This document shows, piece by piece, positions 39,760-44,966 of a stretch of DNA of 64,000 nt; the stretch's first letter is position 1, and the number at the start of each line of letters is the position of its first letter. The position numbers were made by a program, and so were the translations under genes. The notes under the pieces were generated by a model, which had not been told where the DNA came from, searched no databases, and saw only the letters and a program-made list of their open reading frames with translations. Source of the stretch: Chrysemys picta bellii (taxonomy: Eukaryota); the NCBI RefSeq assembly GCF_011386835.1, contig NC_088794.1, forward strand, positions 2,852,001 through 2,916,000. The letters run 5' to 3'.

Positions 39760-40485
39760 GGTTTTGGAATGAAGAAATTAGATACTTTTATCTGTTAACC
39801 TATGGAACGCCCTGTCACATGATTTCATGGAGTTACAATTTCACACACGGCTCAGGACATTTGGGACCTGATGGTTCTTAGGAGCAATTCAAAAATGTAA
39901 AATCAAGACAGTACATTTCAGGGGAAAGATATGAGATGATTTTAGACATTAATCTGTGGAACACTCTGCCACATGATTTTAGGGAGCTAAAACTACACAT
40001 GTGTCTTTAGAATGTGATGGCTCTTAAGGTAAAATTAAAGTGCACAGATCAAGACAGCACATCTTAGAGGGAACATATGAAATAATTGTATCAATTAACC
40101 TCTGGAACTCCCTGACACTCAATTTTGTTGAGTTAAAATTTCACACATGGCTTAGAAAATGTAGCATGTGATACATCTTAGGACAGAATTATATTGGGCA
40201 AATTAAGGTAGCACATTTCAGAAGGAATTTGATTTTAACCAGTAGCCAGTGGAACTCCCCACCACATGAGTTTACAGAGCTTAAAATTTCACTCCCAGTT
40301 CAGGAAATGTAGTGTCTGATGGTTCTTAGGAAAGATACAAAGTGAGAAAATCAAGACAGCATACTAGACATGGAAGAAACTAGACATTTTTATCTGTTAA
40401 TCTGTGAAACTCCCTGACCTTTGATTTCACTGAGCTAAAATTTCACACTCTGCCCTGAAAATTGGGGCTTATGGTCTTAGAAGGC
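39760..40485 (+). repeat. ~150-bp five-unit array, copy 2
   Basis: Near-identical to 12290-13015. Confidence 0.8.
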
Positions 40486-41683
40486 AAAATCTCTCTGGAC
40501 TGGCGTCTCCCGACAGATTTTGAGGGAAAAATCCACGGCTCGGGCCGATTGGGTGAGGCATCCCAGAGAAAGAACGTCTATACACGGGCCGAAGAATTGG
40601 GAGATATTCTCCTCCGAGATCCCCCCGCTGGCTTCCACCATCACCCGGGGATGGGCGGCTTTCAGCGCGCTGGCGGCAGGATGCAAATCCTAGAGGGACA
40701 AAGGGCAAGGTCATAAGGGAAGGGGCTACGGGTCCCCCCACCCCACCCGCTAGCCCCCAGACTCCCTGGTACCTCCGGGGAGAAGTTATCTAGCATGACG
40801 ATGTCAGATCCGGCCCCTGCGGCTTCCAGGGCCTCTTCCAGCGAACGACACTCCACCTCCAGCTTCAGATGAAAGCCAGCCACCCGCTGGGCTTCCTGGA
40901 TGGCCTGGAGGCGGAGAGAGAGTTCAGGCAGGGAATGGAACCCAGGCGTCCGGGTAGGAGACACCCTCCCCCAGCCCCCCAGTACTCCCAGAGATGGAGA
41001 TGGGATCCAGGCATCTGTGATGGCTCCCCTAGGGGGCCCCACTGCGCTCCCAGAGACTGGGAGGGGTAATGGGAACCAGGCATCCAGGTAGGAGACACCC
41101 CCCTACAGTACTCCCAGGGCCACCCCCTTACCTGGGCAATTCCTCCAGCCGCCCAGATGTGGTTATCCTTCAGCATGACGAGACTGCCCAAGTCGTAGCG
41201 GTGGCCCGAAGCTCCCCCCACCAGCAGGGCGTACTTCTCGGCCAGCCGGAAACCCGGCGTGGTCTTCCTCGTCCCAGCCACTTGCCCATGCCAGCCGGCC
41301 TCCCGCGCCAGCCGGCAGGCCCGTCCCGCGGCCGTAGCCACCCCGCTGCACCGTCCCAGGCAATTCAGGGCAGTCCTCTCCCCGAGCAAGAGGTGGCGGG
41401 CTTTGCCGCGGACTTCGGCCACGCGGGCCACGGGCTCCAGCCAGGCCCCCTCGGGCTGGAACCACTCCACTGTGCAGCCCAGCTCGGTAAAGACGGCATC
41501 AAAGAAGGGGCAGCCAGCCAACACCCCAGGAGACTTGCAGAGGAGGACAGCGCGCTCCGGGCCTTCCCCTACTGCGCAGCCGGCGGGGTCGAAGGCCGGA
41601 GCATCCTCTTGGAGCCAGTCCCGGACCAGCTGGCGCAAGCGGGGGGGCGGGAGGAGGTGGGAGAGATCCAGGCGGGAGGTCAT
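40477..41683 (-). CDS. QPRT: Quinolinate phosphoribosyltransferase, copy 2, intact 298 aa
   Basis: Coding exons 41132-41683, 40773-40904, 40477-40689; acceptor of the ATG-bearing exon at 41692. Confidence 0.95.
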
Positions 41684-42941
41684 GGCGTCGGTCTGCAACG
41701 GGAAACCATAGAGGCATTGGGGAGAAGACATACCAGAGCGTATGCTGCTCTTACAAGGGGGGGCATCTTTATGGCGCCACCGAGTGGAGGAAGAGAGGAA
41801 CTGTGCCCAGAGCCAGTGCAACCCTGCTGGGAGAGGCCGGGGCTGGAGTGGCCGGGAGCTCCCCTCACAGCCAGCACCCCCAGCACCGCCTGCTCCCCCT
41901 TTTCCCCTGGACGCCTGGGTCCCCTCCCCCCCATTCCATGAGGGAAGACAGAGAAGGGGTTCACTCCCAGCTCTTCCCGCCACCCCAGGATCCTGTCTGC
42001 GTCTCTCCCTCCGCCCCCAGCCTGTCTGCAGCAAACCCCCTCCCCCAGCACATGGCAAAGTCCATCCCAATCTGTCCCAGAGCAAACAAACAGGGCAGAG
42101 GAATTCCCACTCCACTGCCACGGACCCCGAGCTCCCGGGCCTGGGGGGCCGGGGACCCCCTGAGCGGGAGGGATCTTACCTGCAACTGCCACTCGGTGGA
42201 GTCCGGGAACCAGGGGCAGCTGGACAGAGAGCTGGAGCAGGACACACGTCCGGGTGTGGAAGGAGCAGGGGTGTGGGAGGGGCTGGCCAGGAGGTGGGAC
42301 TGGCCAGGCAGGGCGGGGGTCTGAGAAAACACCTAGGATGCACTTCACACAGAGTATAAACGGCTTCCCCCCGAAAGGGGCCGCGTCCCAGCGCCGGGCA
42401 AGGGGTCCCCATGTGCCCAACCCCACCCCCACCCCCCAGAGCCAGCCGCATCCCAGCACCAGGCAAGGGGACCCCATGTGCCCAGGCCCCGTCCCAGAGG
42501 GGCCACGTCCCAGTGCCAGGCGAGGAGTCCCCATGTGCCCAGCCCCCCCTCCCCACCCCAGAGGGGCCATATCCCAGTGCCAGGCGAGGAGTCCCCGTGT
42601 GCCCAGCCCCCACCCCAGAGGGGCCACGTCCCAGTACCGGGCGAGGGATCCCCATGTGCCCAGCCCCCTGACTCCACCCCAGAGGGGACACGTCCCAGTA
42701 CCGGGCGAGGGATCCCCATGTGCCCAGCCCCCCGACTCCACCCCAGAGGGGACACGTCCCAGTACCGGGCGAGGGATCCCCATGTGCCCAGCCCCCCGAC
42801 TCCACCCCAGAGGGGACATGTCCCAGTACCAGGCAAGGGGACCCCATGTCCCATCCTCCAGAGATAGCAAATTCTGGCCGATGTGGGTGTAAAAGACATT
42901 TCAGAAGCTACATAGCAGATGCCTCCGAGTCCAAAATTCAC

Positions 42942-44966
42942 CTTTTTGCTCTCCACAGGAGTGTCCATTTTGCTCTCCACGGGGGAGTGCAGCGTTACGG
43001 CCTTTCTCCCCTTCTGGCACTTCACACATCGCTCCACCTAGTTGGGACGGAACCACACGACGACATTAACGTTCTCGTACAACAGGACAATCGCACGGGA
43101 AAGGTGGTTACATTTTCACATTTCAGATCGGCACGGCCACGGCCCGTGACGTGGAGCAGGGTTTGGTTCCGTTACAGACCCACTCGACGATGTCCTTAGT
43201 CATCCCAGGCCAATAGTATTGGGTGGTCAGCGAGGTTCCTTGGTGCCCACCCCGGGGACCCCCGTGATGCTGTTCGAAGAGCTGCAGGGCTTGTTCCCTC
43301 GTGTGCACCACGACGACCTTTCTCCCTTTGCCAGTATGGAAAAGCGTCCCGTCTGCGGATCAGAGACGAGGGGGACACTGATGAGGAGAGAAGCAATTAT
43401 CAGATATTTTCAAAGTCACTGGCAGGGCCGTCCTTAGCTATTCTGGGGCCCTACGCAGCCCCCCTGTGGGAGGGTGTGGGGGGGCAGGCCTCCGTGGGGG
43501 GGGAGGGGGCTGGCTTGGGGAGCAGGGGGGCCCAACCCAGCTGCAGAGCTCAGGGCAGTGGGGGAGGGGCTGGGGCAGAGCAGGGGTGGGAAGAGGCGGG
43601 GGCGGAGCAGGGTGGGGGCTTTGGGGAAGGAGTGGAGTGGGGATGGGGATGGGGCGGAGCAGGGTTGGGAAGAGGCAGGGCAGGGGCAGAGCAGGGTGGG
43701 GGCTTTGGGGAAGGGGTGGAGTGGGGGCGGGGCTGTGGCAGAGCAGGGCGGGGCCATGGGGAAGAGGCGGAGCAGGGGCTGGAGCAGCACGCAGCAATGT
43801 GGTGCCCCAAATCCCCTGGTGCCCTATGGAGCTGGGGAGAGGCAGCCCCGCTCACCGGTTCATTATAAGTAGGGCCACGCTTTGGTCATGGAGGTCACAG
43901 AATCCGTGACTTACAAAGGCCTCCGTGACTTGAGCACCCAGGAGCTCGGAGCAGCTGGGAGCCACAGGCAGGGGGATGCCCCACAGCTCCCAGCCGGGCC
44001 CCAGGGGTGGTGTGGAGACCCCACAGCTCCCCATTTTGTCGAGCCTATTTTCAGTAAAAAACAGGGATAGGTCACAGGCTTCCATGAATTTTTCTTTATT
44101 GCCCGTGACCTGTCCGGGACTGTTACTAAAAATACGTGTGACAAAATCTTAGCCTTAATTATAAGGCATCTGCATATGGAAGATATCTGAACACTGTCTG
44201 GCTCGTCACGGCTTGAATACAACGTGGGGCGGGAGGAATTTCAGTAGCTGGTTATAATTAGATGTTGAAATGTTTTTTAAACTAGATATCCTTGCTCGAG
44301 GAATGTCTGGGGATTGCTGTTGTTTGTCGATACCCTGGATCACCTACTTGAGAAATAAAGTTAAACCATAGGGGTTTGTTTGGTGCTATTTATCATTTAT
44401 GCTCCTGTGCCGTGTAACTGACACACACGTTTGTTACGGCGCCCACGTGTGGAGCACAGGGCATGTTCTGGGAAATGTGAAAAAACCCTAACCGTGGTCC
44501 CAGTCGGTCAGGTGAACGCTCCAAAGAAACCCAGTCTCGGGGCATCGGGACCATAAGTTACATGCCGAAAAGTCCATTGTATTCTGTGTGGGTATTCCGT
44601 GAAAAAAAGGATTGCTTGCCTTCCAAAGAAAAGTTGGCAGCAAATCGATGCAGATTAAGTCTGCCGGCTTTATTCACTCCTTCAGGATACTTGTTTCTTC
44701 TCTTTAATGCCAACACCTGGGCGATTTTTTCCTCAAAGGATTTCCCTGAGTACTGTTCACAGAAGCTAACATTTACATAATGGCAAACATGCACTATCTA
44801 GCCATATAACAATCGGATTTTATTTTGTAGGTAAACTTGTGGCCATATAACCAGGGTAAGCCAAACTCAACGACGCAGCATTCATAGAGTGACACAAGTC
44901 AATTTGAACTACATGTCTACGTTTGGAGTATTTGTGGCTTACAAAGTCTGGCTGCCTTTGATCCAT
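42942..44966 (-). CDS. GIN1/Ginger-like integrase H2C2 zinc-binding-domain exons, copy 2, open 142 aa
   Basis: Exons 44943-44966 (tentative), 44620-44752, 43180-43352, 42942-43037. Spliced product: [142 protein letters not shown]. Confidence 0.78.

Follow-up and report, generated by a model that had tools for sequence, protein, structure and literature searches.

The QPRT locus and its upstream exons

The DNA analysed (the window) is a stretch of 64,000 nucleotides (nt) from the painted turtle, Chrysemys picta bellii (assembly GCF_011386835.1, contig NC_088794.1, positions 2,852,001 to 2,916,000 of the forward strand). It carries QPRT, the gene of an enzyme of nicotinamide adenine dinucleotide (NAD) synthesis, and, just upstream of it in the same orientation, the 5' part of a GIN-like gene, i.e., of a gene related to gypsy-type integrases (exons 1, B, C and D, no catalytic core). 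Exons of the two are joined in a chimeric transcript, which is real and already present in public annotation. Window coordinates are used throughout; they refer to the second of two tandem copies of the locus (copy 2) unless stated otherwise.

Exon ends were fixed from the sequence and from joints in RNA-derived contigs; all exons are on the minus strand. QPRT comprises exon 2 (41132..41692; cag|ACC GAC GCC ATG, ATG at 41683), coding for QRPTase_N and the beginning of QRPTase_C, exon 3 (40773..40904) and exon 4 (40477..40689, stop codon included). Its identity was given by matches to PF02749 and PF01729 on these three 3' exons; counted from the ATG at 41683 the protein has 298 amino acids (aa) and shows 88% identity to Carettochelys QPRT and about 75% to lizard QPRT. 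The 141-nt exon in front of it (42180..42320) is a non-coding leader of QPRT or, once exon D is attached, an in-frame linker of 47 codons. Beyond an intron with an array of ~64-nt tandem repeats (42380..42934) follow exon D (42942..43037; CxxC half of the Integrase_H2C2 domain and two 8-residue repeats; phase-0 end AAG|gtgaat), exon C (43180..43352; His-His half of the domain by Pfam, with a 15-nt in-frame deletion), exon B (44620..44745; GIN-like N-terminal region, open reading frame (ORF) intact, GC donor GAAG|gcaagc) and a relic of exon 1 (45126..45276; ancestral start ATG GCG G at 45132-45126, in-frame ATG further upstream at 45276). A hypothetical exon A (44943..44966, ATG...TTT|gtaagc) had been proposed in an earlier reading of the bare letters (the sequence-only reading); neither this exon nor its acceptor at 44752 has RNA support in the four runs described below, and the corresponding stretch contains TAA in Chelydra.

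Exon D ends in phase 0 (last exonic base 42942), the 141-nt exon is stop-free in frame 0, and QPRT exon 2 is in the same frame as exon D, all as claimed in the sequence-only reading. Its negative observations held as well: tblastn with the DDE-core part of the turtle paralogue P0122 (see below) gave zero integrase-core matches in the whole window at E ≤ 1; neither AATAAA nor ATTAAA occurs between exon D and QPRT exon 2; and QPRT has no CpG island of its own, the observed/expected ratio being 0.23-0.63 across 41600-42999 and the sole island near the locus (47400..47800) adjoining DCTPP1 (plus strand, about 47805-51243). The rve/DDE core that lies downstream of the HHCC finger in GIN1/GIN2-type genes is thus absent from the QPRT locus; exons derived from a transposable element and host exons are spliced there into one open frame, as in host-integrase fusions, by the joints 42320|42942 and 41692|42942. 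The chance of such an in-frame match is not negligible, since the phase-0 end of exon D is inherited from its parent gene family, a phase-0 start 9 nt ahead of the QPRT ATG is expected a priori in about 1 case out of 3, and one open frame is no rarity in a C-rich exon of 141 nt.

Exon C alone matched the Pfam profile PF17921 at 33.3 bits (cut-off 25.5; E 5.4e-8; profile positions 4-47 of 59). In copy 2 the two His (QHH...GGH, exon C) and the two Cys (CVKC, exon D) stand in one open frame; in copy 1 a frameshift separates the His pair from the Cys pair. From the second His to the first Cys neither window copy has the usual spacing and helices: relative to the paralogue and to turtles with intact exon C, the 15-nt deletion takes out IFKTR (tortoise), residues 132-136 of the tortoise fusion, at the start of a predicted helix (132-140) after the second His. 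The state of the module thus speaks against the H2C2-QPRT protein of the sequence-only reading; five helix residues are gone here, and a frameshift or the loss of a Cys ligand is found in other turtles.

QPRT and the GIN relic are part of a tandem duplication of roughly 27.5 kb (about 1-19,700 and 27,754-46,950; main blocks 95-99% identical); a run of N stands at 20289-20788, past the end of copy 1. In copy 1 (13008..15943, minus strand) exon C lies at 15943-15770, exon D at 15627-15532, the 141-nt exon at 14852-14712 and QPRT at 14223-13008; its exon C holds one additional G at 15844, the source of the frameshift, and the remaining exons differ from those of copy 2 at 0-3 positions. The divergence between the copies exceeds that of a simple haplotype duplicate. 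Both copies seem to be transcribed; RNA contigs carry alleles of each (e.g., 43198 A/C, 42272 T/G). Arrays of the ~64-nt repeat stand at 42380-42934 and, in copy 1, at 14982-15524; a homologous repeat lies upstream of QPRT in Emydura, which has no GIN piece.

Transcripts and annotation

Contigs of four presumed-RNA runs (X1, X4 and X5 of organism A, X9 of organism B; three studies) were aligned to 41100-47090; the runs contain RNA, because the contig joints fall exactly on GT..AG. The joint of the 141-nt exon to QPRT exon 2 (41692|42180) was found in all four runs, that is, in three studies and two organisms. The joint of exon D to the 141-nt exon (42320|42942) was found in X1 (one run, organism A) on a contig of 437 nt composed of 97 nt of exon D, the entire 141-nt exon and 199 nt of QPRT exon 2; its depth was 8.6, vs 13.1 in the downstream QPRT contig. 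The direct joint of exon D to QPRT exon 2 (41692|42942) was found in X9 (one run, organism B; depth 6 vs 15 for QPRT), and the joint of exon C to exon D in X1. Both ways of splicing exon D had been foreseen in the sequence-only reading.

Misassembly of contigs, or genomic DNA within the runs, is a very improbable source of these joints. The RNA nature of the runs is presumed, contigs can be chimeric, and three of the four fusion-specific joints are each carried by a single contig whose shorter side measures 27 nt; against an artefact stand the exact position of the joints at the GT..AG of predicted exon ends, the recurrence of the joint 41692|42180, and the independent gene models of Chrysemys, Terrapene, Mauremys, Caretta, Chelydra, Gopherus and Chelonoidis, which share the same junctions.

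Translated from the Met of exon C through exon D, the 141-nt exon and QPRT, the ORF of copy 1 gives exactly the protein XP_008174263.2 of RefSeq (QPRT of Chrysemys picta bellii, 388 aa; start MTKDIVEW near the 3' end of exon C), and that of copy 2 differs from it by one residue; this fused form is the sole RefSeq protein listed for Chrysemys. Further fusion proteins were retrieved by word-indexed search with a 298-aa turtle QPRT as query, and RefSeq fusion models are at hand for seven turtle species. Terrapene has a 388-aa form like that of Chrysemys; similar N-terminal extensions are present in Mauremys reevesii (364 aa), Caretta (367 aa) and Chelydra (409 aa, partial). The tortoise isoforms (Gopherus evgoodei, G. 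flavomarginatus, Chelonoidis abingdonii; 495-567 aa) combine the full GIN-like N-terminal region, Integrase_H2C2 included, with QPRT, the 141-nt exon being present or skipped. Region search with residues 1-87 of the protein P0218 returned three RefSeq clusters only and zero ORFs from transcriptome contigs. No paper on a QPRT-integrase fusion was found in full-text literature searches, and QPRT, Ginger, integrase and turtle are not mentioned in the main text of a survey of host-transposase fusions (bioRxiv 10.1101/2020.05.07.082677); the fusion is apparently undescribed in papers. The remark in the sequence-only reading that no description was known thus agrees with the literature searches but not with RefSeq, where the fusion is already modelled.

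Run X5 has the deepest QPRT cover of the four (35-42), with zero cover over 42300-43499 and a contig end inside the 141-nt exon. In this run exons C and D must be missing from most QPRT mRNA, which must start within the 141-nt exon or close to it; because the cover over 42300-43499 is zero, QPRT has an additional start of its own. The sequence-only reading had named this pattern, QPRT transcripts that start at ~42300 or lower and lack exon D joints, as evidence against itself. The contig end at 42271 was considered as a transcription start and rejected; position 42272 differs between the copies, and an assembler would break there anyway. Run X4 is intermediate.

Exons A and B had zero contig cover in the three organism-A runs. 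The proteins of 443 and 490 aa proposed in the sequence-only reading require both of these exons; the exon set noted there does give exactly these open frames. Unspliced contigs in X1, X4 and X9 span the C-D intron and extend into the intron upstream of exon C; if the latter is retained, an in-frame TGA stands 3 codons before exon C, and the ORF would therefore start at the single Met of exon C. In one X1 contig (record 5) the 5' 229 nt join 28 nt upstream of the exon C acceptor and match nowhere in 41100-47090.

The unspliced contigs, and the X5 cover of QPRT without exons C and D, would suit a different explanation, namely that the H2C2 exons form a separate short gene or transcribed pseudogene with an end of its own and that the joints to QPRT are rare read-through. 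This is improbable: no polyA signal lies between exon D and QPRT exon 2, the depths of the fused contigs in X1 and X9 are not those of a rare product, and the one Chrysemys protein listed in RefSeq is the fused form.

Origin of the GIN piece and its state among turtles

A phmmer search with exon C against 1.84 billion representatives gave 23 hits, none of them a near-identical fusion, and identified a family of turtle GIN-like paralogues; the nearest proteins are turtle 'GIN1-like' proteins (68-70% identity), and the paralogues bear the UniProt name 'Gypsy retrotransposon integrase-like protein 1'. The paralogue P0122 (Mauremys mutica, 313 aa; H2C2 and rve core) was mapped to its locus, and its introns are at positions matching those that follow exons B, C and D at the QPRT locus. 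What lies next to QPRT is thus derived from a multi-exon GIN-like gene, of which the 5' part is left and the core exons are lost. In P0122 the DDE core begins in the exon following the equivalent of D, and the intron sequence past the D-type donor is alike in the QPRT-linked piece and at the P0122 locus (gtgcgttttggac vs gtgaattttggac). The exon B donor is GC (GAAG|gcaag, window 44620/44619) in 6/6 QPRT-linked turtle loci that keep exon B, vs GT in the paralogue (locus L009, 6603); tortoise RefSeq models treat the intron after exon B as a GC-AG intron. The derivation of the upstream exons from a transposon-type integrase gene, put forward in the sequence-only reading, is supported by Pfam, by the homologues and by the shared intron positions.

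On the Mauremys mutica chromosome CM035636.1 (L009 1-1917 and 6001-10564) two H2C2 GIN-like genes lie head to head within 5 kb; the neighbour of P0122 has 278 aa and equals P0123 in length. This pair is on the same chromosome record as QPRT, so that the GIN-like family looks locally duplicated, not dispersed.

QPRT loci of nine species (Chelonoidis, Mauremys, Caretta, Chelydra, Platysternon, Pelodiscus, Carettochelys, Emydura and alligator) were compared up to 10 kb upstream of QPRT; tortoise DNA was that of Chelonoidis only, and Gopherus was judged from protein models only. The GIN piece is upstream of QPRT in 7/7 cryptodiran turtles examined: in Chelonoidis, Mauremys, Caretta, Chelydra and Platysternon, in Pelodiscus (exons B and C) and in Carettochelys (a wrecked exon B only). 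It was not found in the QPRT loci of Emydura, a pleurodire, or of alligator, and ~5 kb lying between the repeats ahead of the 141-nt exon and DCTPP1 have no counterpart in Emydura; the sequence-only reading had proposed to look for the arrangement in other turtles and archosaurs. Core exons were found at none of the QPRT loci searched. The 141-nt exon, with its donor CAG|gtaaga and the upstream motif ...tcag|ACCCC, is present in all turtles, Emydura included; it belongs to QPRT and is older than, or independent of, the GIN piece.

The state of the piece differs from turtle to turtle. Chelonoidis and Chelydra retain exons B, C and D undamaged, and complete protein models exist for Gopherus. In Platysternon exons C and D are intact and exon B is gone; in Mauremys exon B is gone, exon C has lost 2 nt and 16 nt, CxxC has become CxxR and the exon-1 ATG is lost; in Caretta exon C has two 1-nt deletions and the first Cys is replaced by Arg. 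The painted turtle lacks 15 nt of exon C in both copies and has the +1 frameshift in copy 1; its exon-1 donor is GG in both copies, vs GT in five other turtles, and tortoise models start at the ATG equivalent to 45276. The Platysternon QPRT next to the piece (QXTE01000927.1; L010 about 6150) ends exon 2 with TAG where the last codon elsewhere is CAG; a second, apparently intact QPRT (P0213) is on another contig, so that Platysternon too has two QPRT copies, one of them likely a pseudogene.

Function of the chimeric transcript

The reading preferred here, at a probability of about 0.65, is that in the painted turtle the relic is an alternative upstream start and a set of 5' exons for QPRT, not the source of a working H2C2-QPRT enzyme. 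Exon D would formerly have been spliced to DDE-core exons, and its inherited phase-0 donor would now join the acceptor of the 141-nt leader or that of QPRT exon 2, both in frame by happenstance. From the joints and the cover we infer that the relic supplies upstream exons, and probably also the start site, for QPRT in some samples, its transcripts presumably being unable to terminate before QPRT; other transcripts would begin within or close to the 141-nt exon and encode the usual QPRT of 298 aa. The chimeric mRNA most likely yields 388-aa QPRT with an N-terminal extension of ~90 residues, probably mostly disordered, that would comprise the CxxC half of the finger only, the two repeats and the 47 residues, rich in Pro and Ser, that the leader exon encodes. 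A working H2C2-QPRT protein is most likely not made from this mRNA; the 443/490-aa protein, even if produced, would have a damaged finger.

Several results weigh against this reading, and most of them favour another, in which an H2C2-QPRT fusion protein is under selection in at least some turtles (tortoises, Chelydra; possibly copy 2) and the zinc-binding GIN domain, carried on a disordered linker, gives QPRT a new property, e.g., nucleic-acid or chromatin association or altered assembly. The contigs give neither isoform shares nor true 5' ends, and some samples may express exon B or exon 1: three other presumed-RNA runs (X3, X25 and X13) contain a 110-140-nt part of 44610-45290 (index search). 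The frames of 443 and 490 aa are open, the ORFs of exons B, C and D are unbroken in Chelonoidis and Chelydra, and complete models exist for Gopherus; the RefSeq isoforms seen for the three tortoise species are complete fusions without exception.

For an estimate of selection, codon models (GY+F3X4, fixed tree) were fitted to exons B and C together with the first 20 codons of exon D; pairwise Nei-Gojobori ratios and parsimony branch counts were too noisy for single branches. For five intact-frame lineages including Pelodiscus omega was 0.45, and omega = 1 was rejected (2ΔlnL 15.2, p about 1e-4), which indicates that the H2C2 piece was, during some of its history, coding sequence under constraint. 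The 141-nt exon, read in the fusion frame, gave omega 0.40 (2ΔlnL 5.3), lower than in 21/21 pseudo-coding controls (introns, untranslated regions (UTR) and upstream DNA of the same loci; omega 0.53-1.83, median about 1); it is exactly 141 nt long in lineages with intact H2C2 exons, and 139 nt in Mauremys and 143 nt in Caretta. Over all six durocryptodiran taxa, indels in exons C, D and 141 are rarer than in the flanking non-coding DNA (5 vs 14 expected, or about 7 by the count of another alignment). In the AlphaFold model of the 520-aa Chelonoidis fusion residues 1-49 are disordered, 51-160 form a confident N-terminal domain (predicted local distance difference test (pLDDT) 73-89 by 10-residue block), so that the tortoise GIN region is predicted to fold, residues 166-228 with the 8-residue repeats are disordered, and the QPRT fold begins at about 230.

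Against a selected fusion stand the independent breakage of the module in Mauremys, Caretta, Carettochelys and copy 1, the loss of exon B in Platysternon, the helix-removing deletion in both window copies, the lost exon-1 donor of the painted turtle and the want of cover on exons A and B in the three organism-A runs. For the four durocryptodiran lineages (Pelodiscus left out) omega was 0.74, not different from 1 (2ΔlnL 1.3; controls 0.53-1.83), and on the long Pelodiscus branch the low omega may go back to the stage of a complete GIN-like gene; the nucleotide identity of exons C and D to other turtles (0.86-0.94) is inside the range of introns and UTR (0.71-0.96). A selected fusion in some turtles is on balance unlikely. 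On this reading coding constraint acted on the GIN piece early, probably when it still belonged to a whole gene or was already fused; some lineages may retain the constraint, and in others, the painted turtle included, the piece is decaying. The fuller claim, that in part of the cryptodirans, most plausibly the tortoises, GIN-like H2C2-QPRT is a selected protein and the main or only QPRT product, tethering an NAD-synthesis enzyme to a zinc-binding, possibly nucleic-acid-binding module, is slightly more doubtful still; if it were true, the painted-turtle locus would be that of a lineage losing an ancient fusion.

The relic as an upstream start and 5' exon source for QPRT may be compared with known systems. 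ZBTB11, the example of the sequence-only reading, is a host protein with an isolated, coreless HHCC module of integrase-like type at its N-terminus, and that module is conserved in vertebrates and needed for function; the turtle module differs in that its ligands or frame are lost in several turtles. In transcription-induced chimeras (conjoined genes) and with first exons derived from transposable elements, exons of an upstream unit likewise splice to the leader or the second exon of the next same-strand gene, and usage varies by sample; here the upstream unit is a truncated relic without a 3' end of its own, so each spliced transcript from it must run into QPRT, and the frame is kept open in several species. 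Host-transposase fusions (SETMAR, CSB-PGBD3, KRABINER) also have transposase or integrase exons joined to host exons by splicing; the turtle piece differs from them in being the N-terminal zinc-binding region only, placed at the N-terminus, in a host partner that is a metabolic enzyme and not a regulatory domain, in a donor gene that already bore introns, and in its decay in several lineages. Most young fusions of this kind are reported to be alternative isoforms that occur beside the transcript of the parental gene (Cosby et al., bioRxiv 10.1101/2020.05.07.082677), and the turtle fusion shares this feature. GIN1 and GIN2 are vertebrate gypsy-integrase genes, GIN2 lying between OGFOD2 and ABCB9 (Chalopin et al. 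2012, PMC3424704). The QPRT-linked piece shares with them the N-terminal region, the HHCC zinc finger of gypsy-integrase type and the multi-exon structure, but is without integrase core and is located between DCTPP1 and QPRT.

Taken by itself the window offers a modest finding, a real and annotated chimeric transcript whose integrase part is probably non-functional. Captures of transposase or integrase domains are known mostly in regulatory proteins, and a fusion with a core metabolic enzyme would be unusual. The turtles form a natural series for the rise and decay of fusions: tortoises and Chelydra have the intact module, the painted turtle a damaged one, and Mauremys and Caretta a broken one. 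For annotation, owing to the relic exons turtle QPRT entries in RefSeq/UniProt span 298 to 567 aa, and at least two are named after the integrase (G. evgoodei fusion entries in UniProt, titled 'Gypsy retrotransposon integrase-like protein 1').

Two repeats of the surroundings may be recorded. A large array of ~62-nt tandem repeats with GC 0.76 and strong negative GC skew occupies 48138-49968 (also 1186-1507) inside the DCTPP1 region; Emydura has one or two units only at the matching place. At 46300-46700 the RNA contig depth exceeded 10,000 in 4/4 runs, with many loose ends at 46606-46611; this stretch resembles an abundant dispersed repeat (like a short interspersed element), not a feature specific to the locus.

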